From: Hyphochytrium catenoides
Lineage: Eukaryota; Protista; Hyphochytriomycota
Assembly: GCA_900088475.1 (NCBI GenBank)
Contig: FLMG01000883.1
Span: 1-62,061, forward strand
DNA length: 62,061 nt
Reading direction: 5' to 3'
Below are positions 27,022 through 59,400 of this stretch, piece after piece (the first letter of the stretch is position 1; the number at the start of each line of letters is the position of its first letter). A model generated the notes under the pieces. That model did no database searches. It saw only the letters and a program-made list of their open reading frames with translations, and was not told where the DNA came from. A program made the translations under genes and the position numbers.

Positions 27022-29049
27022 ATGGGGATTTCTCTCCGCGCTTTACGATCAAAAACCGCGCTCCTTGCTGTCAGTCTTCTGTTGAACCTTCTCTCAGGGC
27101 CATTAGCTCCGGTAGAGATAGCTGCGGGAGGTGCAAGCCACCTTCGAAGTCTTTCTTCATCCTCTTCTCTCGACAGTCTTTCTCTTCAAAGTGCAGATCT
27201 TGCGGACGTGACAAATCATGACCGTACTTTCTTTGAGAGAGAAGAAAGCAACGGACGGAGCGCACACTACTTTGCCCGACGAAGAAGACGAGCGCAGGCA
27301 GCAACAGCGGACGCTGCCGCTGGAGCTGCCAATAGAGGAGGTGCCGCGGCTACGACTGCTTCTGCAGACGCCCTGGGCATCCCTCCGTCTATCTTTGCCC
27401 GGCTGACCCAGCTACAGAACGCCGCGATAGGCAACTGGAGCGCGATCGGGCTTCCTCTTCTAAACCCTAAACTTCCCACAATCATCCAAGCGGCTGCGAA
27501 AGCTCTTGCTAATGGCCCTGCTGGATCTACGGCTGTGGCGGACTCCAATGCTCTTTCCACTGGCTTTGGTTCAGCCGCTGTAGCAGACTCCAACGCGCTA
27601 GCTAATGGTCCTGGATCTACGGCTGTGGCAGACTCCAATGCTCTGTCCAGTGGTATTGGATCTACGGCTCTGACAAACTCTAACGCCCTTGCTAATGGTC
27701 CTGGATCTACAGCGGTGGCAGACTCTAATGCTCTATCCAGTGGCATTGGATCTACCGCCGTGGCGGATTCTAATGCTTTATCAAACGGACCTGGCTCTAC
27801 GGCAATTGCAGGCTCCAATGCCCTCGCCAACGGCCCTGGCGCGACTGCCATAGCAGACTCTACTGCTCTAGCCAATGGTCCAGGAGCCACTGGTGTGGCC
27901 TCATCCACTGCTATTGCTAGCGGAGGTGGAGCTACGGCTGTGGCTTCGTCAACAGCTGTCGCCAATGGCCCTGGCTCTACCGCCTTCGCATCATCAACGG
28001 CTATCGCAGTAGGAAACGGCGCCTATGCTCGGGCCTATTCTTCTTCTTTCGCCAGCGCTTATGGGCCCGTCCTCCCGTATAATCCTGGGCCGGCCTATCC
28101 TCCGCCTCCTTACCCTGGACAGCTCCAGTTCCCGCCGCCTCCGCCTCCAATCTTCTACCCTCCTCCTCCTACTCTTCCGCCAGTTCTTCCTCCTCCTCCT
28201 CAACCTTTCCCTAACCCGCCACTACCGGCTCCTCCTCAGCCCTCGCGACCTCGCCCGCTGACTCAGGCAGAGATCATAAAGGAGTGCTTGGCTCTTGCCA
28301 GTGGCTACGCGTTCTATCAGCACCAGGCGCTAGTGGCAAACTTGGGCAGGACGACGTTCTTTGAGCCTCCGGCGCTCTTTCCTCCCGATCTCCCTCTTTT
28401 TGACGTTTATTGGCAAGAGAGACCACCTGTTTGGACTGATCCGCCTCCAGTCTTCCGTCTTCCTGGAAACAGAGTGATCACGGCTCCTCGGCGGCCGCCT
28501 ATTCCTCCCGTGATCCAGCCTCCACCATTTCTATGGCAAGGAGACTGTTCCGTGGTTCCTCGAACCTTCAGCTTGCGTCCAGAGTGGCGCATCGCTGATG
28601 CAGGCGTGCCTTCCAACTGGAAGAGCATCGCTGACACGGATGTGCTGTCCAAGTTACTCATTCTGGATTTGAGCTTTGAGACATCACAAGGTGGTTCTCC
28701 TGTCGAGATCTTCTCCTCTTTGTTGAGAACCCAAGACAATCACTTCCCACAGTTTGACTACTACGGCCCCAATCCAGAGCGCGGCTGCACGTGGGAGGCG
28801 CTGCGCTCTTACTTTGGCCGCAACGATGACAATGTGATGCTCAAGTGGGTGGAGACGCTGCTCCGTCAGAATAGCGAGGCTTTTCTCAAGTGGCACGCGG
28901 TACAGAGCGAGTTCCATAGGTTTGTAGAGTGGCACCAGCTCTACTTTCCTTACATCTGCGGGACGGGGCTCAAGGCGAGCTTCAATGAGGCGTACAATGA
29001 CTGTCTGAGGTTCTATTGGTATAATAGAGAAGAAGACTATGATAGATAG
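27022..29049 (+). CDS. Secreted protein with ~12 x 15-aa Ala/Ser/Gly repeats, a Pro-rich linker and an unknown C-terminal domain
   Basis: 675-aa intronless ORF; N-terminal hydrophobic signal; GSTAVADSNALANGP repeats with synonymous codon variation; Trp/Phe/Cys-rich C-terminal domain. Confidence 0.85.
   Translation: MGISLRALRSKTALLAVSLLLNLLSGPLAPVEIAAGGASHLRSLSSSSSLDSLSLQSADLADVTNHDRTFFEREESNGRSAHYFARRRRRAQAATADAAAGAANRGGAAATTASADALGIPPSIFARLTQLQNAAIGNWSAIGLPLLNPKLPTIIQAAAKALANGPAGSTAVADSNALSTGFGSAAVADSNALANGPGSTAVADSNALSSGIGSTALTNSNALANGPGSTAVADSNALSSGIGSTAVADSNALSNGPGSTAIAGSNALANGPGATAIADSTALANGPGATGVASSTAIASGGGATAVASSTAVANGPGSTAFASSTAIAVGNGAYARAYSSSFASAYGPVLPYNPGPAYPPPPYPGQLQFPPPPPPIFYPPPPTLPPVLPPPPQPFPNPPLPAPPQPSRPRPLTQAEIIKECLALASGYAFYQHQALVANLGRTTFFEPPALFPPDLPLFDVYWQERPPVWTDPPPVFRLPGNRVITAPRRPPIPPVIQPPPFLWQGDCSVVPRTFSLRPEWRIADAGVPSNWKSIADTDVLSKLLILDLSFETSQGGSPVEIFSSLLRTQDNHFPQFDYYGPNPERGCTWEALRSYFGRNDDNVMLKWVETLLRQNSEAFLKWHAVQSEFHRFVEWHQLYFPYICGTGLKASFNEAYNDCLRFYWYNREEDYDR
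27523..28062 (+). repeat. Coding 45-bp tandem repeat (~12 units)
   Basis: Units such as GGATCTACGGCTGTGGCAGACTCCAATGCT...AATGGTCCT. Confidence 0.9.
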
Positions 29050-34465: not shown

Positions 34466-36028
34466 CTAAGAGGAATAGAGCTCGAAGATCTCTAAGGAGA
34501 GAACCAACTTTGGCACTCTCTCGATCCAGCGTCCTATCTCCCTGCTTCCCTTGCTCCTCACGACCATATACTCATCCACATCCTCAAGCACTGACCACTT
34601 CAAACCTCTGACATTATCGATGGCACTCAGCGCCTCACAGAGCTCCGTCAGCACTTCCAGCTTCGCTTGAAAAATCTTCTTTCTTCCCCACCAGCGCGCC
34701 ATCGTGTACATATAAAGCACCAGCGTGACCATCGTCCCAATGAAGAAAAGGATGAGGAAAGGCACCATGACCGGGACCGCCCCCAGAAAGAGAAGAACCA
34801 TCGTGAGGAGCCAGAGAGAGACGCCAACCAGCTCAGGGAGGAGGAGATACTTCTTCTTCACTGAAAATGACGCGTCGGCACTGTTGAGATCTTCGATACG
34901 CGCTTCAAATGACTCTTGACTCAAGATACCTTCCAGCTCGAGCGGATAGTCGGCCTTGAAAGGGCAGCAGAGCATCGGCGCCATCGTGAGAAAAAGGGAA
35001 GAAGAGGAAGAACAGCAGGAAGAAGAAGCGTCTCTCTCTTTCTCAAATCGCAGCCTGGCGATGACTCGTTTTCTTCTTCTCTCCTGCTGTCCTCCGCCGC
35101 CTCTATTTTCTCCGTCACGATTGTAAGGAAGATGCACGAGGACGGCACGCATTCTTTCCTCGGTGGAGCTTCTTCGCCCGCCTCCTCCTCCCGCTTCTCT
35201 TCCTCTTCGATCAAAGTGGTGGCCTTCTCGATTGTCTCTCTCTCTTTCTTCTCGTCTTTCTCTTCCCATTTCTGGGCCTTCTCCGCGGTGCCACCTCTGT
35301 TCTTCTACGTCTTCTTGACTCAGGAGAGACGTAGAAATGATGTTGGTCCCTAAGTGTCTATCAGGAGAGAGAGAGAGAGAGGCAGAAGAGCGGATAGCCG
35401 TGGCCACAGCGATAGGAAGAGCATGAACGGAAGGTGGCAAAGCTCCGTTTCTCTCTCTTCTTCTCCTCTCTTCCTCCTGCTCCGCTGCTGCTGCTCGCTG
35501 TCTCTCTCTCATCGCCGCTTCTCCTGCTGCTCTTTCCTCTTCTCTTCGTCTCTCTTCTTCTTCGTCTTCGTAGTAATGTGGGATAACCCCAACGGGAGGA
35601 GTGCCAAGAATTTGCTGGTAGAAGCGAGAGGGAGGAGCTTCTCTCTCTCCTCTCTCCCTGTTATCGTCATTGCCATAGCAGGCAGGAGGAGTTTCTATCG
35701 TGGGCGCAGAGGAAGGAGGTAAGGGAGGGAGAGAAGATAGGCCCACGGCGCTGCCTCTGATGTTTCTCCTTCTCTCTCTCTCTTCTTTTCCCTTTAATCC
35801 TCCAGAGACTGGCAAGTGTCTTCTCCAGGAAGACACAGAAGAGGGAAAGGAGGGGCTTTGCCGTGGATGGTCCTCTTTTCTCTCTTCGATGTGTGTGTCT
35901 CTCTCTCTTCCAGGCAAGAGAGGAGAAGAAGGAGAGCGATTCGAGGGAGACGCGCTAGACGCAGAGAAAGGGTTGCGCCCACGTGGTTCTCCTCCTCCTC
36001 TTCTTCCCTGGCCGTTCGCGTGATCCAT
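34466..36028 (-). CDS. Membrane protein with a C-terminal Erf4/golgin-A7-like domain and 2 TM helices
   Basis: YPLELEGILSQESFEARIEDLN motif followed by a hydrophobic hairpin and ...NVRGLKWSV; long disordered N-terminus. Confidence 0.65.
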   Translation of the reverse strand: MDHANGQGRRGGGEPRGRNPFSASSASPSNRSPSSPLLPGRERDTHIEERKEDHPRQSPSFPSSVSSWRRHLPVSGGLKGKEERERRRNIRGSAVGLSSLPPLPPSSAPTIETPPACYGNDDNRERGEREAPPSRFYQQILGTPPVGVIPHYYEDEEEERRREEERAAGEAAMRERQRAAAAEQEEERRRRERNGALPPSVHALPIAVATAIRSSASLSLSPDRHLGTNIISTSLLSQEDVEEQRWHRGEGPEMGRERREERERDNREGHHFDRRGREAGGGGGRRSSTEERMRAVLVHLPYNRDGENRGGGGQQERRRKRVIARLRFEKERDASSSCCSSSSSLFLTMAPMLCCPFKADYPLELEGILSQESFEARIEDLNSADASFSVKKKYLLLPELVGVSLWLLTMVLLFLGAVPVMVPFLILFFIGTMVTLVLYMYTMARWWGRKKIFQAKLEVLTELCEALSAIDNVRGLKWSVLEDVDEYMVVRSKGSREIGRWIERVPKLVLSLEIFELYSS

Positions 36029-38759: not shown

Positions 38760-41078
38760 ATGGGGACAGCAAAGGACAGTGTCTCTCTCTTTCTCTTTCC
38801 CTCTTCCTTCTCATCCTGGTGGTGGAAGGCTTGCAACTCCTCACCCAAAAAAAGTAGAGGGAGAGTGGCTGCGGCTCCTACTGCCTCTCAGACGGATGAC
38901 TCTTCTCCTTCTTCTCCTCTGACCTCTCCATCTTCTCCTTCTCCTCTCGTCTCTTCTGCCTCAGCGGCTTCTCTCCTTCTCAGTCTGTTTGGTGACTTTC
39001 TCCTTCTCCTTATCAGCAGCTTTCTCACGGCCGTGGCCTCTCTCTCTCTATATTTTGCTTTTATCATAAGCTTTCCCTCGCCTGCTTCTGTTCCCTGGTG
39101 TGAGTCGCGCTGCGTCCCTTTCTCTTTCTCTCTGAACTGCTCAGGAGCTTTCCCTGTCTCCTCTACGTGCGGCATCACGTCTACCTTCGGTCACTATCTC
39201 TATATTATGCTTATCCAGCACGCCGTCAGTCACTTCGGCCTTGTTCATAGCTATGGCGCGCTCTATCCCGATCGTTATTTTCGGACGAGGAAACGACTCT
39301 TCATCGTAGTCTCGGCACTGACGGTCTTCTCGGACATCATCTACACGGTGCAGGTCATGATCATCGGGAACATTGGCTTCTTTCCCGGTCAGATCGTGTA
39401 TGTTATGGTCATTCTCTATCTTTTTGCATCTCATGGCGGCAGAATCAGGAATAACTCCAAGGCATATGTCCGCGGCGTGGCCACGCTTCTCTTCCCCAGT
39501 CTGGGCGTCATTCTCTCTCTTAATGTTCTCTTTCCTCTTCTTCTCCATCGCTGGGATGCCTCTCTCCGGCGCTTTCTCGTTGGCTACGTTCTCCCTGGAA
39601 TCCTGTTCCTCTTCTCTCTCGTCACGGAGAAATGTCTCTCTGGCTTGCTTCGGCTGCAGAGACAGAGAGAAGAAGAAAGGAAAAAGAAGAAAGAGAAGAA
39701 TTCGATGGGAGAAGAAGGAGAACCAACAGAAAGAGAAGAAGAAAAAGTAGGAAGGAAGGTTCTTGTTTTTTCTGAGAAGAAACAAAGGGCCGAAGAAGAA
39801 GACGCAGAAGAAGAGAGAAGTGAGAAGAAGAAAACAACTGAGGGAAAGAAAGTGAACCCTCTCTCTCCCTCTCCTTCAATGGACCTCTCTGTGAGTCGTC
39901 AGAGCACTAAGAGAGACCCTGAAATGAAAGAGAGCCATAATTCCCGAAACCCGCACGACTCCAAGGGGAGGAAAGAGCCTAAGAAGCCGTCGTTCATAGC
40001 TGAGACATTTGTCGGAGGAAGAGAGAGAGAGAGAAAGAGTGAAGAAAGAAGAGCAGAGGAGAGAGTGGAAGACTGCAGAAGAGAGGAAGAGACAGAGGGA
40101 GAGAAAGAAGAAGGAGAACTAAGAGTCGACCTTGCTCTCTTTCTGACCTATCACATGTTTCAGTCTGTACAGCTTTGCGCCTCTCTCTCCAATGTGGAGA
40201 CGAACGGGCTCCATCTCGTCTCTCTCTCTACGATGACATCCTGCGTAGGATTGGGAGCCACGATTGCTTGGAAGCTCCTCCGTCTCAAGAGAGAAAGAGA
40301 GAAGACAGTGGCAGAGCAGAAGAAGAAAGAGGAGACTGCTGGTGCTTTGAAGAATACGCTGGCGCAGATGGCTGAGAGAGGACAGAGAGAAAGAGAGGAG
40401 AAGGAGGTCGAAAGAAGAGAACGGTTCTCTGCGGCAAAGAAAGAAGAAAGACAAGGATCCGGAAACGAGAAGGAAGAAAGTCATGGCTGCGCTCTTTTAT
40501 CACCGACAAAAAATCTGGTAGAGACCGAAATCTCTGTTGCAGATTTGAAACTCTATAGGAATCAGCGCCAGATGAAGATCGTAACGGAAGCGCAGGATGG
40601 CGTGGCGCTGTGGCAGAGAATGGCCGTTAATATGATTATGGGAACAGTGACCTGCATGGGCCTGGTGACCGCGGTCATTTTGTGCAGAAATTTTGTCCAC
40701 ACAGGTCTTCTCCGCAGCGAGACGTGCCCTCTCTCTCCCCAGACTTCTTCTTCTTCCTCTTCGTTCTCTCTCTCTTCTCCTTCTTATTCTCCAAACGAGA
40801 AAGAAGACCAATCGGCCCGCTTTCCTTGGGAGTCTGCAGATTCTCTGTGGAGCTCTCTCGACGTCAGGACCGAGTATTTTCTCTATATCTTGGCAGTGGT
40901 GGCGGTTCTCTTACTCTTTATTGGCTGCTTAGAGGTGCTGGGCTTCCGTGTGCTGAGGCTGTGGAAGAAAGGAAGAAGAGAACGAATGAGAGACGCAATG
41001 GTTCTCTCTCTCTATCTTGGGCCGTATATGAGTACTAGTCTTCTCTTTGCGATACTGACAGGACCGCAGTCCTGCTAG
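38760..41078 (+). CDS. Orphan multipass (~11 TM) membrane protein, paralog A
   Basis: 772-aa intronless ORF; collinear with 49648-52698 (WCxSRC, IGNIGF(F/Y)PGQI, GGRIRNN, RVDLALFLTY, LWQRMA, PWxSAxSLWSS). Confidence 0.8.
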   Translation: MGTAKDSVSLFLFPSSFSSWWWKACNSSPKKSRGRVAAAPTASQTDDSSPSSPLTSPSSPSPLVSSASAASLLLSLFGDFLLLLISSFLTAVASLSLYFAFIISFPSPASVPWCESRCVPFSFSLNCSGAFPVSSTCGITSTFGHYLYIMLIQHAVSHFGLVHSYGALYPDRYFRTRKRLFIVVSALTVFSDIIYTVQVMIIGNIGFFPGQIVYVMVILYLFASHGGRIRNNSKAYVRGVATLLFPSLGVILSLNVLFPLLLHRWDASLRRFLVGYVLPGILFLFSLVTEKCLSGLLRLQRQREEERKKKKEKNSMGEEGEPTEREEEKVGRKVLVFSEKKQRAEEEDAEEERSEKKKTTEGKKVNPLSPSPSMDLSVSRQSTKRDPEMKESHNSRNPHDSKGRKEPKKPSFIAETFVGGRERERKSEERRAEERVEDCRREEETEGEKEEGELRVDLALFLTYHMFQSVQLCASLSNVETNGLHLVSLSTMTSCVGLGATIAWKLLRLKREREKTVAEQKKKEETAGALKNTLAQMAERGQREREEKEVERRERFSAAKKEERQGSGNEKEESHGCALLSPTKNLVETEISVADLKLYRNQRQMKIVTEAQDGVALWQRMAVNMIMGTVTCMGLVTAVILCRNFVHTGLLRSETCPLSPQTSSSSSSFSLSSPSYSPNEKEDQSARFPWESADSLWSSLDVRTEYFLYILAVVAVLLLFIGCLEVLGFRVLRLWKKGRRERMRDAMVLSLYLGPYMSTSLLFAILTGPQSC

Positions 41079-42295: not shown

Positions 42296-45200
42296 CTACG
42301 CGGAAGGCTTGACAGGCGGCACGACAGGCAGACCAGAGGTCAGGTTGGTGGTTATCTCCGTCAGCTGAGCATCTGTCAGCGCGAAATCAAAGAAGAAGAA
42401 GGCCGAGAGGTCCATGGACGCTTCATTAGATGACGTTGTTGACTGCCCGATGTGCCAGGTGGACAGGCTCCGGTCCGTCAGAGGAACGGACGCTGTGGCA
42501 GAGATAAGGCTCACGCCGTTCTTATAGACTTGCGCCTGGCCGCTGCTCCGGTTATACCGCGCCGCATAGGTTGCCCACTCGTTCTGGACAATGGCTCCGT
42601 CGCTGGTGTTACAGTTCAGGACGGCACTGGCTCCGTTGAGGAGAATGAACTGCAGCGCGCTGGTGCTGCCTCTTCGTCTGAAGGTAAGGCTGTCGGGCGA
42701 TGCCGCTGTCGCGGTGCCGGCTTCGAAAATGGTTGAGGAGGTGGCCGGAGTGCTGGTGAAGCGCATTAGCGTCACGATTGTCAGTCCGCCGCTGCGAGGC
42801 AACGCTGTGACGTTCAAATCTCTTGACGCCGCCACTAAACGTTGTCTATCAGTCCGATTGAAGGAGACGAATGGCCCATTTAGATGGCCGCCCAGGGTCC
42901 TGAAGCGCGGAGCAGAGCTGGCCGTCGACGCAGAGGCAGCATTGCCCCACTTCATGACTGCAGCGCCATCGCTGCTCTGGTTGTTAAGGTTCAACGCCTG
43001 CAAGTGCAGGGCTTCCGGACTGTAAGAGAGCACCGTGATACTGTCCGATGGCGACGCAGCAGCCACACGATAGACATTGACCGGAAGATTGGCTGTGAGG
43101 TTGCTGGAGAGCTCGATTAGCTGACTGTCGCTTAGGCTAAAGTTGAACATGTAGAAGGCGTTGATGTCCATCACGGCAGCAGTCATCCCAGTAGCAGAAG
43201 CCTGCCCTGCCATCCGCCACTCCCTGACCACTCTGTTTGTCAGCACGGCCTGGACGCTGCCAACACTCTGGCCATTCTTCAGCAGCTCCGCTCGACGAGT
43301 AGCAGCTGAGTAGCGGAAGCCATAGACAGCCCAAACTCCTTGCTCTATGACACCAGCGGCACTGACAACGCGGAAGTCCAGGTCTCCCGAATCACTGTGC
43401 GCCTGGAAAGCGAGGTGATCCGAGGTGCCCTGACGGAAGAGGACGATATTACCTGAGAAACCTACTGTCGTTTGTGCACCTAAGAGCACTCGATCGTCTT
43501 CGTTGGGGGCGTTGCTGAAGCGCATGAGCACCAGGATCGTCAGGCCGTGAGTCTCAGGGTAGATGGTCATGGATCCGGTGAAGAAGAACTTAGAAGGTGA
43601 AAATGATATGTAAGGTCCATTGGACGGACCGCCGCTTCGTACATATAGCGGTGCAGTACCTAAATGCCTGCCAAAGCTGTTGACCACTCTATTGACCAAG
43701 GAGTTGTTGGCAGAGTTCGCGTCGAAGAGCGTGGACGCCAGCATGATGCAGGGGAACCAATTGATAGGAAGTGGCGTTGACGACCCAGCGCCCGCAGCGG
43801 AGGTAGGAGCTGTGACGTTCAAGCCTAATGAGAGGTTAGTAGTGATGGCGGCAAGCTGGCTGTTGGTCAGGGCGAAGTCAAAGATATGGAGAGAGGCGAT
43901 GTCTACCGTAGCCAATCCCGTCGTCAGGAGGACGTTCGTGGATCGGGCGATGAAGAAGGCGCCATAGTTCCGCTGAGCAGGGCCCGGCCATAGAGAGGAA
44001 CACTGGCCAACTGATACGCCATTCTTGATGATCTCCAGGGTTTCAGTTGATCCTCCAGAGCTGCGCACAGCCCAGACCGCCCATTCATTCTGGACGACAG
44101 TGCCAGGCATACTGACCACACGGGCACCTTCATGCGTTGTGAACTCAAGAGCATCAGAGCCTCCATAACGGTTCAGGGCTAAACTGTCCTGAAGGTACCG
44201 CTCACCAACTGCGTTTAGATGAAAGACACGCTCCCATGCACCAATAACCGTTCCGGGTAACCGGAGCAAGGCGACTGCGCTGAATCCCAAGGCGCCCACA
44301 TTAAAGCGCCGTGAACTACCGAAAAGCCAGTGAGGGAGAGTGCGAAGGAAAGAGACATACGGCCCATTAAGATGCCCGCCGCTGCTGTAGAAGATAGGAG
44401 CTGAGGCGTTGGAGGCGCTGCTCAGTTTTTCCCAGGAGAGGACAGCGCTACCATTTTGCTGCCCGGCTTGAATCAGTGCTGAAGCCGCTAGTTGGGCACC
44501 AGAAGGGCTAAGCGGCGGTAGGAAGGAGACAACTCCCTCGCCTGATGAGGTCAGAGACGTATCTACCGGCAGACTAGCACTAAGATTGGAAGATACGGCG
44601 AGCAGCTGGCTGTTGGACAGCGCGAAGTCAAAGACGTAGAAGGCGCCAAGATCAAAGTTGCCATGGCTCTGTTCCGCGTGGTTCGCTGACCCAAGCCTAA
44701 ACCAGCCGTTGGACAAATCTGTGAACTTTACGCGGCGCAGGGAGTACCCAGTGCTGAGACCGTCCTTAATGATCTCTGCTCCTAGCGTCGCACTTGAATA
44801 TCTGAGGGCCAAGACTGTCCATTGCTCAGACATAATAGCGCCAGGTTCAGTGATCAGAGTCAGAGATGGTGGTCCCGGAACGTCTTGGTTCTGATAGTAG
44901 TCGGAGGCCAGGTGGCTGGAGTTGCCAAACCGTCGGAGGTTGATCGTCCAGTTCCATGTGCTACTAGGGGCGCTGGTTCCAACGCTGAACAAGTGTTCAT
45001 CATAGACAGGCGTACTGGAGGTGAAGCGCACAAGCATGAAAGCCGTGAAGCCGCCTTTGGTGGCAAGAGGCAAGTTCACGGTGGCTGGTGTCTCCAAGAA
45101 GTGCTTGTTCTCACTGTTGAAGGATATGTAGGGGCAGCCGTTATAGCCGCCACTGGCTCGGAAGATAGGCTGTTGGGCAGTGGCCGTCTGACGGAACTGA

Positions 45201-45574
45201 TCCCAGGTTGAGAGCCCAGAGTTATTGCTTTGAGATGATACCAATGAGGCTAAATGACACCATGCAGGATCTGTGGGTGGAGTTGGCGCTGGCACCGATG
45301 TGGGAGAGGCAGGATTAGAAGCCTGTGTAGGTGTCGGCTGTGGGGCGGGCTCCGGAGTAGGTTGCGGGGTGGGCTCAGCGGTTGGCTGTGAACTTGGCTG
45401 TGAGATGGGCTCAGGTCCTGGCTGAGTGGTAGGCTGTGGGGCGGGCTCAGGAGTTGTTTCAGGAGGTGCCTCGATAGCTGGTGTGGGAGTTGGCTGGGGA
45501 CTGGGCTCAGGAAGTGGCGCTAATGAGGCTGGGGGACTGCCGGGTGCTTGGCACTCTCCATCTGCCGCCAGTAG
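42296..45574 (-). CDS. Protein with a Pro/Thr/Glu/Gln linker and four tandem LamG/concanavalin-A-like domains (true start unknown)
   Basis: Frame open 45574-42296; four ~240-aa repeats each with GG.NGP(Y/F)(I/V)SF, W...A.RY....E..KNG.S and FDFAL(S/T).SQL...(S/T)NL...LPV. Confidence 0.75.
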   Translation of the reverse strand, partial: LLAADGECQAPGSPPASLAPLPEPSPQPTPTPAIEAPPETTPEPAPQPTTQPGPEPISQPSSQPTAEPTPQPTPEPAPQPTPTQASNPASPTSVPAPTPPTDPAWCHLASLVSSQSNNSGLSTWDQFRQTATAQQPIFRASGGYNGCPYISFNSENKHFLETPATVNLPLATKGGFTAFMLVRFTSSTPVYDEHLFSVGTSAPSSTWNWTINLRRFGNSSHLASDYYQNQDVPGPPSLTLITEPGAIMSEQWTVLALRYSSATLGAEIIKDGLSTGYSLRRVKFTDLSNGWFRLGSANHAEQSHGNFDLGAFYVFDFALSNSQLLAVSSNLSASLPVDTSLTSSGEGVVSFLPPLSPSGAQLAASALIQAGQQNGSAVLSWEKLSSASNASAPIFYSSGGHLNGPYVSFLRTLPHWLFGSSRRFNVGALGFSAVALLRLPGTVIGAWERVFHLNAVGERYLQDSLALNRYGGSDALEFTTHEGARVVSMPGTVVQNEWAVWAVRSSGGSTETLEIIKNGVSVGQCSSLWPGPAQRNYGAFFIARSTNVLLTTGLATVDIASLHIFDFALTNSQLAAITTNLSLGLNVTAPTSAAGAGSSTPLPINWFPCIMLASTLFDANSANNSLVNRVVNSFGRHLGTAPLYVRSGGPSNGPYISFSPSKFFFTGSMTIYPETHGLTILVLMRFSNAPNEDDRVLLGAQTTVGFSGNIVLFRQGTSDHLAFQAHSDSGDLDFRVVSAAGVIEQGVWAVYGFRYSAATRRAELLKNGQSVGSVQAVLTNRVVREWRMAGQASATGMTAAVMDINAFYMFNFSLSDSQLIELSSNLTANLPVNVYRVAAASPSDSITVLSYSPEALHLQALNLNNQSSDGAAVMKWGNAASASTASSAPRFRTLGGHLNGPFVSFNRTDRQRLVAASRDLNVTALPRSGGLTIVTLMRFTSTPATSSTIFEAGTATAASPDSLTFRRRGSTSALQFILLNGASAVLNCNTSDGAIVQNEWATYAARYNRSSGQAQVYKNGVSLISATASVPLTDRSLSTWHIGQSTTSSNEASMDLSAFFFFDFALTDAQLTEITTNLTSGLPVVPPVKPSA

Positions 45575-49647: not shown

Positions 49648-52600
49648 TTAACAAGAGGAAGGCGCATCACTAAGCATTGCCAGCAAAAGGCTCGTCGTCA
49701 TGAAAGGGCCAAAGAGAAGACAGAGAGTGATCGCTTCTCTCAGGTGCTCTCTTCTCTCTCTCTTCGCCCAGAGCCTTAAGAAGGGAAAGCCCATCACCTC
49801 TAAGCTGCCAATAAACAGCAGCAGCACCAGCACAACGGCCAAAATATTGAGAAAATACTCTGCCTTCACGTCTATCGAACTCCATAGAGACTCCGCAGAT
49901 GCCCACGGAAGAGCCGTCTTCGAAGCGTCTCTCTCTCTATTGAAAGAAGCGGGAGATGAAGGGGAAGAGAAGAGAGCCACGGCAGACGAGGAAGAAGAAA
50001 ATTGAGAAGAAGTGGAGTGGCTGGAAGAGATGGAGGAAGGAGAGACAAGGGGGAGAAGCCGCCGTGTTGGTGGGAGAGAGGAGGAGGAGGAAGAGAGACG
50101 ACGAGAAGACGAGCAACTTTCAGTGTTGAGAAGACCACTCAGGACGAAGTTCCTGCCCAGAAGAACCGCTGTCAGGACACCCATGCAGGAGAGAGTCCCA
50201 ACAATCATGTTGGCGGCCATTCGCTGCCATAGGGAATCTGTTTCTTTCTGCGCGAATCTCCAGATCTCTATCTGAGACAGATTCTCATACATCTTCGAAT
50301 CTGCATTTGGAGATTCGATCTCTGCTGCGGGCAAACTTTTCGGTGAAGCGGTTCCCAACGCCATACTTCCTTTAGCTTCACCGCTTCTTCTCTCTTCTCC
50401 TTCTCCCTCCTTCTCTTCTCTCGCTCCTCCTCTTGCTGGTCTGAGCACTTTCTCTCCCACATCTATGCCAAGATCTTTGCCTCTTCGCTCATCTCTTTCG
50501 TTCTCACAATGGGAAGCACCGTCCACCGGTGGAAAACTCATCGGACCCAATAACTTTCTCTCTTCGAGTCCCTTCTCTTCCATTAACCTTCTCTCTCCGC
50601 TTTCCTTCTCTCTTTCTCTCGTTTCTCTCTCTCTTCTCCCTCCTCGAGCCTTCTCTCTCCTGCGCAGCTGGAACAGGTTCCAGGCAATGGTAGCTCCCAA
50701 TCCTGCGCAGGAGGTGGCAGTGGAGAGAGAAACGAGATGGAGACCGTTTGTCTCCAAGTTAGAGAGAGAGGCGCAGAGCTGAACGGACTGGAACATGTAA
50801 TACGTGAGAAAGAGAGCGAGATCGACCCGTACGCCGCCTCTCTCTCTTCTTCTCTCTCCTATGCCGACGTCTCCTTTCTCTCCTTTCAGTGTGTCTCTCT
50901 CTTCTCTGCACTTTTCCTTCTGTTCCCTCGTAAGTGAGCCAATTTCAGGGTCAGCCGCGCTCTCTCTTCGTCCTTCCTCTGCTAGGACTTCTCTCTCTTC
51001 CCCTTTTTCTTCCACCTCTCCCTGTGAGAGTACCTTCTTCTCTCTATTTACTGCTGTTCCCTTCTCTTCTATATCTCTCTGTCGTCCTCCTCTATCTCCT
51101 TCTGCTTGAGAACAAGGTCCTTCCATCGGAGAAAAGACGGTGGAACTGGGTTTTCTGCTATTCTGATTTGGAAGGAAGAAAGAAGTAAGGTTCTCTTCTT
51201 CTCTCTTTCCTCTGTTTTCTTCTTTCTCTCTCTGCACTTCTGCTCTTCTCTTCTCTTTCGTTGTCCGTTCTTCTTCTTTGTCCTCCCTCCTGCTGGTGGT
51301 GGTGCCTCCTCCAAGCTTCATCACAGCAGAACCATAGAGAGAGGGAGGAGAGACAACCGTCACTACCTTTCTTTCCTCATCCTCTTTTGTTTTCTTCGCT
51401 TCGTTTCCTCTTCCTCCTCCTATTCTTATTATTAGTGGTAGAGACCGTGTCTCTTCTCTCTCCTTCGTCTTCTTCTGTTTCCCTTTTTCTCCATCATCAT
51501 TTCTTCGAAAGACGCTTGCAGCCGAGGATGAGACTTTGATTGTCCTCGTTTCCTTTCTCATTTCAACCTTCTTTTTCTCTTTTATTCCCTCTGTTCCCTC
51601 TATTTTCTTCGTCTTCTCTTCTCTTCTTCCCCCTTCTCTTCCCTTCTCTTCTTCTTCTTCCTCTTCTTCTTCTTTCTTCTCCCTTCTTCTTCTCTTCTTT
51701 TCTTCCTCCTCCTCTAGTACTTCTTTTCCTTCTCTCTCTCTCTCCAGCCGGAGCAAGTCAGAGAGACACTTCTCCGTGAGAAGAGAGAAGAGAAAGAAAA
51801 TGGCAGGGAGAATGTAGCCAACAAAAAGGCGCCGGAGAGAGGCGTCCCAGTGATGAAGAAGAGAAGGAAAGAGAACATTAAGAGAGAGAATGACGCCCAG
51901 ACTGGGGAAGAAGTGCGTTGACACGGCCAAGGCACTTTGCTGAAGGTTATTTCTGATCCGACCGCCATCGGGGGAAAATATATAGAGTATGGCCACCACG
52001 TATAGGATCTGACCGGGATAGAAGCCAATATTCCCAATCACCATAATCTGCACGCTGTAGAGCACATCCGAAAGTAGTGTTAGCGCCGAGAGCACCGCAA
52101 ATAGCCGGTTTCGATTCCTAAGGTACCGATCTTGGTACATTGCTCTGTAGCAAAAGAGCATGGCAAGATTGCTGATCCCGTGTTGAACCGAAACTACGTA
52201 GAGAAAGTGTCCGAAGGTTGCCGTCATGCCGCAAGTAGATCCGAACGGCAAGACTCCAGTGCAGTTCTGGGGCCAAGAGAGAGATCCACAGCGCGATTGG
52301 CACCATGAAAGAGAAGAGGGAGAGGGAAAGCTGAGGACAAAGAGAAAATAGAGAGAGAGAGAGACAGCTGCAGAGAGAAAAGTGCTCGAGAGAAGGAGGA
52401 GAAAGTCTCTCAAGAGAGAGAAGAGAAGATGAAGTGGAGAAGAGGCTGATGAGGGAGAAGAAGAAGACGAGGAGGAGGAGGAGGTTTTAGTGGAAGGGAG
52501 AGAGGGAGTGCCTTGGGAAGAAAGAGAGAGCGGCGAGACGGTTGCAGTGACTATCTTTCTTCCTCTCTTTCTCTTTCCCATGCCTCCTGATCCCAGGCCT

Positions 52601-52698
52601 GCTGACCTCCAGGAGGAGGCTAAGAGACCAGACGGATAAAGAGAAAAGAGAGAGAAGAAGGGCTTAGCCTTTCTTTCTCCTCCACCTTCTCTTCTCAT
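49648..52698 (-). CDS. Orphan multipass (~11 TM) membrane protein, paralog B
   Basis: 1016-aa intronless ORF; TM blocks conserved with 38760-41078, charged loops expanded. Confidence 0.8.
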   Translation of the reverse strand: MRREGGGERKAKPFFSLFSLYPSGLLASSWRSAGLGSGGMGKRKRGRKIVTATVSPLSLSSQGTPSLPSTKTSSSSSSSSSPSSASSPLHLLFSLLRDFLLLLSSTFLSAAVSLSLYFLFVLSFPSPSSLSWCQSRCGSLSWPQNCTGVLPFGSTCGMTATFGHFLYVVSVQHGISNLAMLFCYRAMYQDRYLRNRNRLFAVLSALTLLSDVLYSVQIMVIGNIGFYPGQILYVVAILYIFSPDGGRIRNNLQQSALAVSTHFFPSLGVILSLNVLFPSLLHHWDASLRRLFVGYILPAIFFLFSLLTEKCLSDLLRLEREREGKEVLEEEEEKKRRRREKKEEEEEEEEEKGREGGRREEKTKKIEGTEGIKEKKKVEMRKETRTIKVSSSAASVFRRNDDGEKGKQKKTKEREETRSLPLIIRIGGGRGNEAKKTKEDEERKVVTVVSPPSLYGSAVMKLGGGTTTSRREDKEEERTTKEKRRAEVQREKEENRGKREEENLTSFFLPNQNSRKPSSTVFSPMEGPCSQAEGDRGGRQRDIEEKGTAVNREKKVLSQGEVEEKGEEREVLAEEGRRESAADPEIGSLTREQKEKCREERDTLKGEKGDVGIGERRRERGGVRVDLALFLTYYMFQSVQLCASLSNLETNGLHLVSLSTATSCAGLGATIAWNLFQLRRREKARGGRRERETREREKESGERRLMEEKGLEERKLLGPMSFPPVDGASHCENERDERRGKDLGIDVGEKVLRPARGGAREEKEGEGEERRSGEAKGSMALGTASPKSLPAAEIESPNADSKMYENLSQIEIWRFAQKETDSLWQRMAANMIVGTLSCMGVLTAVLLGRNFVLSGLLNTESCSSSRRLSSSSSSLPPTRRLLPLVSPSSISSSHSTSSQFSSSSSAVALFSSPSSPASFNRERDASKTALPWASAESLWSSIDVKAEYFLNILAVVLVLLLFIGSLEVMGFPFLRLWAKRERREHLREAITLCLLFGPFMTTSLLLAMLSDAPSSC

Positions 52699-52897: not shown

Positions 52898-53562
52898 GAA
52901 GAGAAAGAGATATTCTCAGCTATTATGGAGTAGGAAGAGGAGGGAAAAGCAGAGGGCAAGAGAGAGAAAAGTGTGCTTGTTAGTACCTAGCTTCTCTCTG
53001 TGTCACGGCAAGAGAGAAAGAGGGACAGGCTTCAATAGAAAGAATCAGCGCCATCGTAACACCTTTCTCTCTCAATTTCCTTCGTGACCCCGCCGCCGCG
53101 CCTTTCAGAGGAGGATGGAGGTTCAGAAGTGCAGAGAGAGAGAGAGAAAGAACAGAGAAGAGAGAGAGAGGGAAAAAGAAGAAAGAGAAAGAGAGAGAGA
53201 CACAAATAATAAGTGGTGGGGTGAAAGTTTAAGAGAAAAAGCAGGGAGTGGACCATAGAAATAAGGAGAGAGACGATGACTGAGAGCCAAAAGAAAAGAA
53301 GGACGGCTAGGAGAGAGAGAAGAAGACAGAAACGAGCAAGGCATTCGACATCAGAACTGACTACGGGAAAGATAAAAGAGAAAGAATATAGAGAGAGAGA
53401 TTACTGAACGTTAAGAGTAGCGAATGTGAGGTTCTTTGCGTCTCTGTCTTTCCGTTACCCATCCTGCACGCTCTGCATGAGGGCAAGGACGAGAGTTCAC
53501 CTCTCCTATCAAAAGAGAGAGATGAGCAGGTTGAAGAGGAGGAAGGTCACGGCGGTTAGGAG

Positions 53563-53643
<81 letters not shown>

Positions 53644-54025
53644 TAATGGAGGATGTTGAACAGTTAGCTGATCCTCCGCAGTTGAAGCGGCACACACCGA
53701 ATTGCGTTCCTCCTCTTCTCTCATTTCTCTCGTCTCTCTCTCTCTCTTTCTCACCTCTCTCTTTGTCTGTCTTCTCTTTCTCTCTATTCTCTGTTCTCTC
53801 TCCTTGGTATGCCTTCCTCTCCAACTCTCTTGGCTTCTCTCTCTGAAAAATCACTGTGCAGTCTGGCTCTCTTTCTCTTGTCCTTCCCCCTCTTTCGCTG
53901 TTTCCTCGCGGATCCCTCCTGTATTCCCCTTATGACTTATGATCCAGTCCCCCCATTTGTCTCTCTTCTCTCTCTCTCTCTCTCTCACACTCTCTCAGCT
54001 GAGTCCTCTTTCTCTCTCTCTCTCT

Positions 54026-54063
<38 letters not shown>

Positions 54064-54179
54064 CTCTCTCTCTCTCTCTTCATTCAAAGACTACACACAA
54101 AGTACACAGTAACGGCCAAGACAGCCAGTAACGGCCATAATAACCGGTAACGGACCTCTGTTACTTGGAAAGCATTGGG

Positions 54180-54211
<32 letters not shown>

Positions 54212-54763
54212 ACGAGGGAGAGAGAGAGACGCAAGAGCAACACGGCACAGTGGTGACTGTGGAGACAGAGAAAAAAGTCTGAGAAGAGAGAGAGAGAGTT
54301 AAGAGAACAGAGGCGGGCCAGATGCTGACAACAACGAGAGGAAGAAGGACGATGAGGTCCATAGCAAAAAGAGGACGGCAAGAAGAGAGAGTTCTCTGAT
54401 GCAGAAAAGTTCAAGAGACAAAGATTGAGAGAAGAGAAACAGCGAGCGAGAGAGAGGCAAGAATCTAGCGCGTCGCAGGAAGTCGTCGAGAACAGAGAAT
54501 ATCCAGGGAAGAGAGAGGAGGTCACTCTTCTTGTTGGCAATAGCAGAGAACAGTTCCCCAACAAAAGAAAGAGAGAGAGAGAGAGAGAGAGAAGGGCTGG
54601 CTCTTCAATATAAAGAAGCAATGCATTTAATGACTCAAAACTGCTGACAAACAAACAAAATGGAGCGGGACTTTCTCAGTCCCTTGCTCTTTTCTTCTCT
54701 CTCTTTTTTGGGAGAAAAATGCGCAAAAAGCGAAGAGAGAGAGAGAGAGACTGTTTTCTCTGT

Positions 54764-56599
54764 CTACTGTCGTTGTACGGCAGTGGCTCTGGAGTAAGAG
54801 ATACGCTGCTTCCCATAAGAAGTTTGAGTCTTTCCTCTCTTCGTCTTTCTCTGATGTTTCTTGGAAGAGGAGAGAGGCCGACCGTAGTCTCTTTTCGGAG
54901 GAGAAGAGAGAGGAGAAGAGACATAAGGTTGTCTCTCTTCTCTCTTTGGATGCTTGTATCCATGTCGTAGGCGCTTGTGAGAATGGGAGAGGGGCGGAGA
55001 GCCAGGATTGTAGGACGAAGTCTCTCCTAATTCTTTTGGTGGTGAAGAGGGAGAGACTCTTCGTCCATAATATGACTTTCTCTCTCTCTTCTCTCTCGCA
55101 TAATAGTGGTTCTTTCTTCCTCTTCCTTCTCTCTTTCTTCCGTGGCCTCTCTTCTTGTGGGGAAGTAGGCCCTTTGAGGAGAGAGGCTGTGTCTCTCTCT
55201 CTCCTCCACGATTTGCGGGAGAGAGAGAGGGAGGAGGTATCTCTCTCTCTTGAGGAGAGAGAGGCCCGAGGTCCATCTCATGGACGGCAGGAGGAAGAAG
55301 CTCTTGCACTGCCCCGTTGTTCTCTGTTTCCTCTTCTTCGTCAGTACCTTGTTCCTCTTCTCTCTCTTCTTCTCCTGTTTGTTGTGCCTCTCTCTCTTCT
55401 TCTTCTTCACCTCCTGGGATTGTCTCTCTTTCTCCTTCCTTCTCTATTTCTGGTGCTGGCAAGTCAGTGATGAGGAGAGGAGAGAGAGACTCATCTTCTC
55501 TCTCTCCTCCTGTCACGACGGGTGCGTCCTCTTGTCCTCCCTGTTCCCCTCCTTCTCCCCCGGAGGAGAGAGGAATGGGAGGTTCATCTTCTTCTTCAAG
55601 CTCAATGTCTCTCTCTCCTGGGAGAGAACTCTCTCTCTGTCCTGGAAGAGAACTCTCTCTCTCTTCTCTCGCAAAGAACATCGCCCAGTTCTGTCCCAAG
55701 AACCGGGTAGAATGGTCAAGGGAAACTGAAGAGCGGAGCATCGCTTCTCTCTCATTCTCTCTTTCCTCTCTTAACATTGCCATCTTTCTTGAACTGTCTC
55801 TCTCTTCTTCTCTCTCTCTCTTCTGCACCTCTTCTGCCTCTTCTCTCGGCTCTTTCCTCGCAAAGAACATCATCCAGTTTTGCCCCAAGAATCTTTCCCC
55901 GTGGGTTCTCATAGGGGGAGAGGGAAGAAAAGCTCTCTCTCTCTCCATTTCATCTCTCTCTTTCTCTCTTTTCTCGTCTCCCTCCCTCTCTTTTTCTCTA
56001 AGACCGGGAAGACTGAACATGGCTAGATTCTGGCCGACGAATCGCTGAGGTTGATTGAGGGAGAGAGAGGAAGATGAAGAGACAAACCTCTCTTCTTCCT
56101 CACTTTCCATGAACTCTCTCTCTCTTTCTCTTTCTTGGGGTTTCTTCTCGTTCTCTTCCGTGTTCATGTCTCTCTCCTCCTTAAGCCCGGGAAGACTGAA
56201 CATGGCTAGATTCTGGCTGAGGAATCGCTGTGGTTGATTGAGGGAGAGAGACGAAGATGAAGAGAGAGACTTCTCTTGTTCCTCACTTTCCATGAAAACT
56301 CTCTCTCTTTTTCTTTCTTGAAGTTTCTTCTCGTCCTCTCCCGTCTTCATGTCTCTCTCCTCCTTCTGTCCGTCTTGCAAGAAGGTAAGTTTGTCTTCTG
56401 GCTCCAACCAATGGCTGACGCCTAGGAAAGAAGAGATGGAAGAGAGAACGAGAGGAGAGAAACTCTCTTCTTCATTCTCTCTAGGTCTCTCTCCTGGCGT
56501 GAGCGTCTCTCCCTGCACTGCCGCAGCCATTGTCAAGGCCAGCGCTACTGACGCGAGGACCATCCTCTTCTTGTTTCTTCCTGCGCCGAAAGGAGCCAT
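54764..56599 (-). CDS. Secreted precursor-like protein with four RF(L/V)(G/S)QN(L/W)(A/M)MF cores
   Basis: ATG at 56599 (MAPFGAGRNKKRMVLASVALALTMAAAVQG signal peptide); four hydrophobic motifs in Glu/Arg-rich spacers; basic C-terminal tail. Confidence 0.75.
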   Translation of the reverse strand: MAPFGAGRNKKRMVLASVALALTMAAAVQGETLTPGERPRENEEESFSPLVLSSISSFLGVSHWLEPEDKLTFLQDGQKEERDMKTGEDEKKLQERKRERVFMESEEQEKSLSSSSSLSLNQPQRFLSQNLAMFSLPGLKEERDMNTEENEKKPQEREREREFMESEEEERFVSSSSSLSLNQPQRFVGQNLAMFSLPGLREKEREGDEKREKERDEMERERAFLPSPPMRTHGERFLGQNWMMFFARKEPREEAEEVQKREREEERDSSRKMAMLREERENEREAMLRSSVSLDHSTRFLGQNWAMFFAREERESSLPGQRESSLPGERDIELEEEDEPPIPLSSGGEGGEQGGQEDAPVVTGGEREDESLSPLLITDLPAPEIEKEGERETIPGGEEEEEREAQQTGEEEREEEQGTDEEEETENNGAVQELLPPAVHEMDLGPLSPQEREIPPPSLSPANRGGERETQPLSSKGLLPHKKRGHGRKREGRGRKNHYYAREKRERKSYYGRRVSPSSPPKELGETSSYNPGSPPLSHSHKRLRHGYKHPKREERQPYVSSPLSSPPKRDYGRPLSSSKKHQRKTKRGKTQTSYGKQRISYSRATAVQRQ

Positions 56600-56954
56600 C
56601 TTTCTTCTCTCTCTTTCTTTCTCTCTCTCTCTCTCTCTCTTTTCTTTCTCTCTTTTTCTTTCGTTCTCTTTCTCTCTTGGTTTTGCCTTGTCTCCTACGT
56701 TGTCTGTGATCCACAGGGAGGAAAGAAAATTCGGAAGTAAGGGAAAGGGGGCAACACCGCCGCGGACCGCCAGGGGAATGGCGGGGAAAGAGAAAGCGGG
56801 AGAGAGAAGAAGAGAGAGATAGACAGAGAAGAAGAGAGAGAGACAGATAAGAAGAGAGAGAGAGAAGAAGAGAGAGAGACACAGAGACAAAGGGATAAAG
56901 AGAGATGAGAGAGACAGAGCGAGCGAGCGAGAAAGAGAGAGAGACAGAGCGAGC

Positions 56955-57021
<67 letters not shown>

Positions 57022-57364
57022 AGAGGGGAAGACGTGGTCATCGATAACCATCATGCTGAGGAGGGTGGCCTTGCAAGAAGAGTTTGGAACGACATCTCAA
57101 GAGAAAGAGGGGGAGAGAGAGACCGAGAAGAAGAGACATATTGACAAAGAGAGGGAGAGAGAAAGAGAATGGTGGCCCTATACGAACTATGAGACAGACA
57201 TCAGGTGCTGACCGATTAGAAAGAGGAGAAAGAGAAGGAGAATCGGGAAGAGACTTCAGAAGAGAGAGGAACAAAAGAAAAGAAAGAGCCCGGGTGGGGG
57301 AAGCCAAGCAGAAGTTCGGGAGGAGCAAGTTGAAGAACTATAAAAGGTGGAAAAAACAAGCAAG

Positions 57365-57400
<36 letters not shown>

Positions 57401-57728
57401 CATCTGTATCTCCAAACGTAAGAAGTAGCAGTTACAAGGGTCATAGAGTGGGGACACAAGAGGCACAACGTAGCCAACCCGACCTTTTGTCTTAGAATAA
57501 AACGAAGGTGATAAGAATGTAGGGGAACGGGAGAGAGAGAAAGAGAGAAAGAGAGAAAGAGAGAGCGAGAGTGAGAGAGAGAAAGAGCGAGAGGAAGTGC
57601 GACAAAGAGAGAGAGTGAGAGGAAAGAGCGAGTGAGGGAGAGAGAGAAAGAGCGAGGCGAAAGAACGGGCAAGCGAGCGAGAGAGTGAAGAGAGGAGAGA
57701 GAGAGAGCGAGAGAGAGAGCGAGCGAGC

Positions 57729-57762
<34 letters not shown>

Positions 57763-59400
57763 GAGCGAGAGAGAGCGAGAGAGAGAGAGTGGAGCTTATG
57801 TAAAAAATCTCCAAGGGGTGGGTAGGCCTATATGAGGTTGTCGTGGTACTAGTACTATCCCCCACCCACCTAGCTTCCCCTCGTTGACTTCATCTGCGTT
57901 CTGGACTTATTTCCCAGCAGCAGCAGCAACAGCAGCAGGAGGAGAGAGAAGTGGAGGAAAGAGCGAGCGAGGGAGAAAGGAGGAGGAGAAGCAATGAGAG
58001 AGAGAGAGAATAGAGCAACAACCTAGAGGAGAGAGAGAGAGAGAGGAGATGATCCACTCGACAAGACAGCCGAACCGAGTGCAGCAGAAGCGGATCTGAC
58101 GACAAGGAGAAGAGGGAAGAAGAAGAAGAAGAAGAGAACAAGAAAACGGGAGAAGAATGAGACAACAGAGAAAGGAACGGGAGAAAAAGAGAGAAAAGAA
58201 AAGGGAAAATAGAGTGTGCAATGGATGCTCATCACCTGCAGCCTAATAAAACCAAGAAGAAGCTAAGAGGGAAGGAAAGAAGAGCCGGCAGCATGGTCTT
58301 TCAGTATCTCCAGACGACGAATTCTGCATTCTGAAGCCGCAATAACCCAGCTCTTCAGGCAAACATGATGGCCTTGCCCGGAGAACAGCGGTCTCCTTTC
58401 GTTTTTGGCGTCGAGCGGTAGGAGGAGGAAAAGAGCGAAGGCCACCAAACGCAATAGAGGGAGAGACAAGTGCTAGTCGACGGGAGCTAGAGAGACAGCA
58501 AGACAAGAGGAGAGAGAGAGAAAGGGAACAGAGAGAGAGAGACAGAGAAGAAGTAGAGGGAAGGGAGAGAAAAAGCTGGCATTTTCCGTCACCGTCGGTG
58601 CATTGGTTCTCCGTCCCTTCTATCCACTCATTCTACCCTCCAACAACTGCTCCTCTTCTCTCCCTCCGCCTGACAGTAAGAAGAATGATGAAGGACGGAG
58701 CTTCTTTTCTCTCCTTTTCCTTCCCTTTCCCACGTCTCTCTCTCTCTCTCTCTCTTATTCTCTCTCTCTCTCTCTCTCCCTCTCCACTATTTCCGACTGC
58801 CGCCACCCAGGGGAACGCTTGAAGGAAGGAAGACCTTCCCAATGACTCTACGTTTTCAAAAAAATAAGTCTAATATAATGTACGAGAAGAGAGTCTTTCA
58901 ACCCAGCAAGAAGGGCAATCTACCCGAGGAAGTGAAGTGACAAAGAAAGGAAGAGAAAAGAGAGAGAAGAGAAGCTAAGACTATCCTTGGCAAAATCTAG
59001 CAGAGGAGAAGAAAGAGAGAAGACTCTTCTCTCCTTGTGCCCTGGGAAGTCCCGCATTTGAGTTAACGTCGAAGCCTTCAGTCACTGTCTCTAAAGAATG
59101 AAGGAGAGACGGCAGGCGTAAGAGAAAACGAGAGAGACAGTCTCTTCTTCGTCACTTTGCAAAGGAAAGCAGGAACTCCCCCACCTTATAGACTCTACGT
59201 TGACAACGTTAAACCTTTAGACAGAAGGAACGAAGGTTCTGAATTGGAGATCGATCCTTCGTTCCCACGTAGCCGCTGGCGGACCGATGAGGAGGATCAC
59301 CGCCAAAAGCAAGGGGTTCGGGGTCTTGTTCAGAAGAGAGACGAAGGAGGTTGGCCTACTGTCCGATAAGCGGCATGCTGGGGGCCAGCTTCATCTACTC

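Follow-up and report, generated by a model that had tools for sequence, protein, structure and literature searches.

A probably secreted protein of Hyphochytrium catenoides in which four copies of a short hydrophobic motif are conserved among freely evolving charged spacers

Diatoms and oomycetes are both stramenopiles, and R-x-L motifs have been described in secreted proteins of the two groups. In the precursors of the diatom silaffins, silacidins, cingulins and frustulins, the RXL present at each repeat has been taken as the point where an endopeptidase cuts to release the repeats (PMC4557024). In oomycetes, the RXLR motif is cut after Leu and the EER motif after Arg before secretion, and RXLR cleavage is confined to positions near the signal peptide (PMC11754927). 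The KEX2-processed repeat proteins (KEPs) are fungal and include alpha-factor and Ustilago Rep1; the pipeline used for their recognition requires a signal peptide, three or more repeats, KR, RR or KK between the repeats, and repeats that make up at least 15% of the protein (PMC6339444). Some secreted disordered proteins, e.g., Toxoplasma GRA24 (PMC5222587) and TgIST (PMC9279507), work via tandem short motifs, and examples of spacers formed by ER/K single alpha-helices (SAH) are also available (PMC4183817, PMC4571873). In this study, a gene of Hyphochytrium catenoides (Hyphochytriomycota) was compared with these systems. It lies on the minus strand at positions 54764-56599 of contig FLMG01000883.1 (assembly GCA_900088475.1), analysed over its 62,061 nucleotides (hereafter the window), and encodes a protein of 611 amino acids (aa) in which four short hydrophobic cores are set between spacers rich in Glu, Arg and Lys (E/R/K).

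The conserved block of the cores, present in four copies of which about three are independent, is the only sequence-specific, selected element of the protein, and the E/R/K spacers evolve freely. The consensus of the block is R-F-[LV]-[SG]-Q-N-[LW]-[AM]-M-F, ten residues in length; in the four-unit alignment six of these residues are invariant (R-F-x-x-Q-N-x-x-M-F) and the other four vary conservatively (L/V, S/G, L/W and A/M). All four cores, located by alignment and with a core profile, are on the minus strand. Core 1 occupies aa 124-139 (56183-56230, with the block at 56198-56227) and core 2, in which RFV replaces RFL, aa 185-200 (56000-56047, block at 56015-56044). Core 3, of the 'QNWMMFFAR' type, is found at aa 235-248 (55856-55897, block at 55865-55894) and core 4, of the 'QNWAMFFAR' type, at aa 298-311 (55667-55708, block at 55676-55705). 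When the core profile was run against the six-frame translation of the window, exactly four copies were recovered with 25-27 bits, and the next best match reached 5.5; a possible fifth core in degenerate form, SFLGVSHW near residue 57, had no support from the profile.

Cores 1 and 2 both sit in a recent tandem duplication and were therefore counted as one independent observation. The duplication consists of two 183-nt (61-aa) units (55999-56364, minus strand, found by repeat detection), which are 91% identical and are each closed by a core of the 'QNLAMFSLPGL' type. Cores 3 and 4 have a common 42-nt block of 86% identity, and their flanks are unalignable. Compared with cores 1/2, cores 3/4 differ at six of the 10 third codon positions, and the kept residues are written with different codons (Arg with CGA, AGA or CGG, Leu with CTC or TTG, Gly with GGC, GGG or GGA, Gln with CAG or CAA, Asn with AAT or AAC, with swaps in Ala as well). 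Because the two-base swaps in Arg and Leu are silent in the sense frame only, and because the antisense frames have fewer invariant residues and contain stops, the motif is held at the protein level in the sense frame. Within the 183-nt duplicate pair, 12 nonsynonymous versus 3 synonymous codon changes were counted outside the ten-residue block; inside it there were 2 nonsynonymous changes, both at variable positions. Spacer pairs other than this young duplicate were no more similar than composition-matched shuffles (z 0.3-2.8).

The minus-strand frame at 54764-56599 is protein-coding and the gene is real. The stop-free frame extends from 56890 to 54764 (708 codons); its first ATG, with A at -3 and G at +4, is at 56599 and its stop codon at 54764-54766, which gives a complete single-exon coding sequence of 611 codons plus the stop. 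Dense (CT)n/(GA)n microsatellites are present on both flanks of the gene (53400-54700 and 56600-58200). DNA of this kind around the gene makes many overlapping spurious 'SLSL' or 'ERER' open reading frames (ORFs) of 50-190 aa in every frame, so that the length of an ORF had to be checked against chance. For this, the region was shuffled 500 times with its dinucleotides preserved; the longest open run was 138 codons in the median and 316 at most, and none of the 500 shuffles reached 600. Internal stops are absent from the sense frame, whereas every one of the other five frames contains 13-17. A codon log-likelihood, for which the other ORFs of the window served as the training set, favours the sense frame to about residue 450 and is equivocal beyond, the C-terminal tail being the part with the weakest coding support. 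A strong splice donor (GTRAGW) was sought inside the ORF and none was found. On the plus strand, an antisense ORF of 243 aa (55317-56048) overlies cores 2-4 and has its third codon positions in common with the sense frame; third-position changes are therefore silent on both strands, which is a trap for selection arguments in CT/GA-rich DNA. This antisense frame was rejected as the source of the conservation, as it contains 16 stops across the span of the gene and only 3 invariant core residues.

The 611-aa protein is probably secreted. By inspection and hydropathy, its N-terminus (aa 1-27; 56519-56599, minus strand) resembles a signal peptide, with an n-region of charge +4, an 18-residue uncharged stretch of mean Kyte-Doolittle hydropathy 1.84 and AxA-type cleavage sites at about residues 25-30; AlphaFold2 places a helix at residues 9-28. 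Glu makes up 17.5% of the protein, Arg 10.8% and Lys 6.1%, and Cys is absent (0). Residues 28-325 hold the cores, whose starts at aa 124, 185, 235 and 298 are 61, 50 and 63 residues apart, within mixed-charge E/R/K spacers. The remaining 286 aa (aa 326-611), about half of the protein, are without any core and consist of ordered charge blocks, i.e., an acidic block with a net charge of -38 (aa 326-475; 55175-55624, minus strand) and a basic tail rich in Tyr, His and Pro with a net charge of +31 (aa 476-611; 54767-55174, minus strand), both delimited by charge and composition counts. All 10 Tyr and 8 of the 12 His of the protein fall in the tail, together with two SPPK motifs; neither a hydrophobic C-terminus nor KDEL/HDEL is present there. 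The protein is best explained as lineage-restricted and largely disordered, with its charge arranged block-wise. An original prediction, made from the DNA letters and their ORFs, had given the same ORF, four cores and coordinates, which agree exactly with those found here, and the core spacing is now measured. Its layout of a signal peptide followed by repeated hydrophobic cores in charged, fast-evolving spacers is borne out as well, the signal peptide by inspection and hydropathy. The same is true of its view that the cores, but not the spacers, are under selection, in light of the codon-swapped invariant motif, the unalignable flanks of cores 3 and 4 and the spacer z values.

AlphaFold2, run on the single sequence without an alignment, predicted long helices for three E/R/K-rich spacers on the minus strand. 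In the first (aa 67-114; 56258-56401; pLDDT 79-95), the E/R/K fraction rises to 0.62 and opposite-charge pairs occur at i/i+3 and i/i+4. In the second (aa 200-223; 55931-56002; pLDDT 85-91), the fraction is 0.81, with 0.76 salt-bridge pairs per residue, and the third (aa 251-292; 55724-55849) again has pLDDT 79-95. With E/R/K fractions of 0.6-0.8, many i/i+4 opposite-charge pairs and predicted long isolated helices, these spacers would resemble ER/K SAH domains. However, the known SAH domains are intracellular linkers, the helices here come from a single-sequence prediction, and the tracts are probably derived from GA microsatellites. E/K/R tracts of variable length are also found in the loops of two neighbouring paralogous membrane proteins described below, and the E/R/K spacers can therefore be seen as a habit of a GA-repeat-rich genome, their tract composition being probably mutational rather than selected. 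At each core, a short helix of low confidence was predicted. The invariant residues occupy i, i+1, i+4, i+5, i+8 and i+9, positions that lie on the same face of an alpha-helix, and the helical hydrophobic moment of the cores is 0.29-0.36. This periodicity, drawn from about three independent copies, is suggestive only.

Searches for relatives of the protein were negative throughout. Neither the whole protein nor its C-terminal half matched a Pfam family, including WY or other effector domains. A word-indexed protein search with the whole protein gave no match at E<=0.01, and one with the core-4 region found no protein with three 5-residue words in common. Residues 1-330 were also searched exhaustively with HMMER in a set of 1.84 billion representatives; this gave no hit at E<=0.001, the query protein being absent as well. 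The ESM Atlas had no usable match and the sequences of the Protein Data Bank none (0). Metagenomes, viral contigs and prokaryote genomes contained no match (0) to the degenerate DNA pattern of the W-type core. A looser DNA pattern that covers all four cores gave at least 120 single matches, which were rejected as chance: the 44 that fit a slightly narrower peptide pattern were all single-copy and mostly amid stop codons or unrelated sequence. By exact look-up, the 611-aa protein and five other ORFs of the window were absent from the protein collections. Since the query and the ORFs of the window are missing there, the absence of relatives speaks for an unsampled lineage no less than for a young gene. 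The downstream neighbour (49648-52698) was also without a detectable relative, and no synteny route is available through that protein.

The interpretation given in the original prediction stood as far as the layout and the selection on the cores are concerned, but the membership in named precursor families did not: the protein is no KEP, no dikaritin precursor and no canonical PEXEL/RXLR protein. Like a KEP, it has a signal peptide, as judged by inspection and hydropathy, and a short conserved peptide in at least three copies (four cores, of which about three are independent), with more variable sequence in between. In contrast to KEPs, KR, RR or KK do not flank the cores, the spacers measure 34-49 aa instead of a few residues, a 286-aa core-free tail is present, and the organism is not a fungus. 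The cores account for 9.8% of the protein length, versus the 15% cut-off. Cleavage at KR/RR in silico produced pieces of 72, 113, 50 and 223 aa in which cores 1 and 2 stayed joined, whereas in KEPs such cleavage yields the repeated peptides; the only dibasic site that adjoins a core is RK after core 3. As regards dikaritin precursors, which have tailoring genes (UstYa/DUF3328, oxidases) clustered with them, no UstYa-type or other tailoring enzyme was recognised, because the ORFs of at least 108 aa within about 10 kb of the gene had no Pfam domain (multi-exon genes could escape this search). Moreover, the cores contain no Tyr or Cys, whereas a cross-linked Tyr is required in the cores of dikaritins (ustiloxins), and KR does not flank them. 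Membership among animal neuropeptide precursors fell as well, since neither a dibasic-plus-Gly amidation signal nor dibasic flanks were found; the Gly in the core ends ...PGLK and ...PGLR is not adjacent to the basic residue.

R-x-L signals, which are known from diatoms, oomycetes and Plasmodium, offer a stronger lead than could be judged in the original prediction. Three of the cores open with RxLx[EQD] (RFLSQ, RFLGQ and RFLGQ), and core 2 with RFVGQ; at least three such motifs were obtained in 15% of composition shuffles. The four R-x-L-type motifs are at residues 125, 186, 236 and 299, i.e., 98-270 residues after the signal peptide. Outside the cores, RxL is found once, at residue 574; it is absent from residues 28-124 and otherwise from the first 570 residues, despite 66 Arg. 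The overall RxL count is 4, versus 5.5 expected. Every core has Arg directly before it, encoded by three different codons, and Lys or Arg directly after it. EER follows cores 1 and 4 and is frequent in the protein because of the GA repeats. The protein is similar to the diatom RXL precursors (the silaffin Sil1p, silacidins and cingulins) in that it comes from a stramenopile, starts with a signal peptide, is repetitive, has RxL in three repeats and is of charged low complexity. In the diatom precursors, however, each repeat ends with RXL, a further RXL stands after the signal peptide, and it is the charged repeats that form the products (PMC4557024), whereas here RxL opens a conserved hydrophobic block, one copy is RxV, and there is none between the signal peptide and residue 125. 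The two have no sequence similarity. With the oomycete RXLR-EER and Plasmodium PEXEL proteins (PMC11754927, PMC4740378), the protein has in common a signal peptide, a disordered N-terminal region, an RxL-type motif, Gln at the fifth position of PEXEL and EER motifs nearby. It differs from them in having four motifs instead of one, in their distance from the signal peptide, in a Leu that is not invariant and in the lack of a WY domain.

Everything beyond the coding frame, the selected motif and the free spacers is inferred here. Tentatively, and with somewhat less than even confidence, we favour a secreted and disordered protein that acts multivalently by displaying a helical motif for binding or association. 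The block would fold into a short amphipathic helix with the six invariant residues on one face, and this helix could be a binding or self-association 'sticker' shown four times on stiff charged spacers of the ER/K SAH type. At the cell surface or in the extracellular matrix, such a protein may act multivalently, either intact or in large pieces, and its acidic block and basic Tyr/Pro/His tail may aid attachment or condensation. The Arg before and the Lys/Arg after the cores could belong to the motif or be charged 'gatekeepers' of an aggregation-prone segment, rather than convertase sites. This reading is favoured because of the coding evidence and selection on the cores, the free spacers, the helix-face periodicity and the AlphaFold2 helices, and because the features of KEPs are lacking and no tailoring enzyme is nearby. 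The core-free half, with its ordered charge blocks, fits a working protein better than a pro-peptide. By analogy, the protein would work like GRA24 and TgIST, which are secreted and intrinsically disordered and whose function resides in a small number of short, repeated motifs that become folded on binding; as in tandem-motif disordered proteins, conserved short islands are found here in otherwise unconstrained disordered sequence. Unlike them, however, the 611-aa protein comes from an apparently free-living organism, and it has no sequence relation to either. Several points weigh against the multivalent protein. The helix-face pattern comes from about three independent copies and was noticed post hoc, the AlphaFold2 confidence at the cores ranges from under 50 to 66, and the interpretation of the C-terminal tail would follow from composition alone. 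In addition, a multi-copy peptide precursor would have exactly this appearance, with conserved islands among diverging charged spacers after a signal peptide, basic residues bound every core, and the RxLxQ that opens three cores matches cleavage signals of related lineages.

A multi-copy precursor of that kind is a serious rival, if a somewhat less probable one. An endopeptidase of the secretory pathway would cut after the Leu of R-F-L, followed by a monobasic cut behind the core, and the conceivable products would be, for example, xQNLAMFSLPGL and GQNW(A/M)MFFA, acting as signals or surface-active peptides; the RxL cut alone would leave larger end pieces and fragments of 63-111 aa with the hydrophobic motif at their head. 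By analogy with diatoms and oomycetes, a hyphochytrid precursor might thus be cut at R-x-L by a secretory endopeptidase of their type and release signal or surface-active peptides headed by xQN[LW]xMF, although we consider this less probable than not. The layout and the confinement of selection to the cores speak for it, as do RxLx[EQD] at the head of three of four cores with RxL otherwise absent from the first 570 residues, the Arg directly before (from three codons) and the Lys/Arg right after all four cores, and the stramenopile precedents of diatom RXL (PMC4557024) and oomycete RXLR/EER (PMC11754927), with EER after cores 1 and 4. However, Val takes the place of Leu in core 2, and it is the 'x' Phe that is invariant and the Leu that is not, the reverse of the RxL logic; RxL is not enriched, and the abundance of EER is explained by the GA repeats. 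The first motif is about 98 residues past the signal peptide, and RXLR cleavage needs nearness to it (PMC11754927). Dibasic sites that delimit the cores are lacking, the core-free part (aa 326-611) is long, and the two short peptides require a second cut of which there is no sign. The precursor could also be inverted, with the conserved islands as protease sites only and charged E/R/K peptides as products that depend on composition, like silacidins and silaffins. Diatom products are indeed low-complexity charged peptides for which the specific element is the RXL site (PMC4557024), and the spacers here vary freely yet retain their E/R/K composition. This is highly improbable, since the ten-residue conserved hydrophobic block far exceeds the needs of a cut site and variable E/R/K tracts are common in unrelated proteins of the window, which points to a mutational origin of the composition.

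Marginally less probable still is a host-targeting effector of the PEXEL/RXLR type, in which RxLxQ would be an export or translocation signal and the basic tail a nuclear localisation signal. RxLxQ in three cores does fit the PEXEL consensus, and the signal peptide, the disorder and the strongly basic tail are in agreement with it. However, such motifs are single and near the signal peptide, whereas four are present here, starting about 98 residues downstream; Pfam detected no WY or other effector domain; and Hyphochytrium has been described as a free-living saprotroph with one RxLR candidate only (PMC5795050). Improbable, but a little less so than the last two, is a misreading of the gene itself: the N-terminus could be a signal anchor or lie behind an unseen 5' exon, in which case the protein would stay unsecreted, or an unrecognised intron could mean that a part of the ORF, such as the last 150 or so codons, is translated differently, where the coding statistics are equivocal (after about residue 450). 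Against this stand the 611 open codons compared with a shuffle maximum of 316, the ATG with its A at -3 and G at +4, an h-region as short as in cleaved signal peptides, and the lack of a strong internal splice donor.

If the cores are binding or association motifs, the protein would be one more lineage-specific secreted repeat protein, and a clean example of a short motif under selection while spacers driven by GA repeats drift. Processing at RxL would be the more interesting outcome. With an R-x-L precursor, the 'pseudofungi' would have their first peptide-precursor system, which would at the same time be a missing link, with RxL-directed processing ancestral to stramenopile secretion. The several conserved cores headed by RxL would then provide a simple substrate for finding the R-x-L protease of the diatom and oomycete type. 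They would also let one ask whether R-x-L cleavage predates parasitism, the origin of the RXLR signal being an open question.

In the surroundings of the gene, no protease, tailoring enzyme or recognisable receptor was visible, and Rfam found nothing in the window. The sole Pfam domain found in the window, Laminin_G_3, is 9.5 kb from the gene. It occurs in a 999-codon open frame without ATG (42296-45295, minus strand), probably an exon of a larger gene, as several tandem concanavalin-A-like copies (Pfam E 1.9e-19), each closed by a similar 'FDFALT(D/N)SQL...NL'. Two further ORFs, at 38760-41078 (plus strand, 772 aa) and 49648-52698 (minus strand, 1016 aa), encode the paralogous orphan multi-pass membrane proteins mentioned above, which are 53% identical. 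About 9-11 helices were predicted in them; the pair is conserved in its membrane segments, and in the E/K/R-rich loops there is a difference of about 240 residues. Neither a Pfam family nor a relative in the word search was found for this pair, and the AlphaFold2 model of the 49648-52698 protein (mean pLDDT 40.7) was too poor for a fold search.

Another ORF of the window (27022-29049, plus strand, 675 aa) is intact and has a signal-peptide-like start with R-S-L about 10 residues behind it, an RxL position that resembles the diatom and oomycete arrangement. It contains about a dozen 15-residue tandem repeats of the 'ADSNALxNGPGSTAV' type, a proline-rich hinge and a C-terminal domain rich in Trp, Tyr and Phe, and belongs to no Pfam family. 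The 520-aa ORF at 34466-36028 (minus strand), also outside the Pfam families, has an N-terminal half that is long and rich in E/R/G, and one or two hydrophobic segments in its C-terminal part. At 853-1731 (minus strand), a 292-aa ORF looks by eye like a retrotransposon protein of the Gag/UBN2 type.

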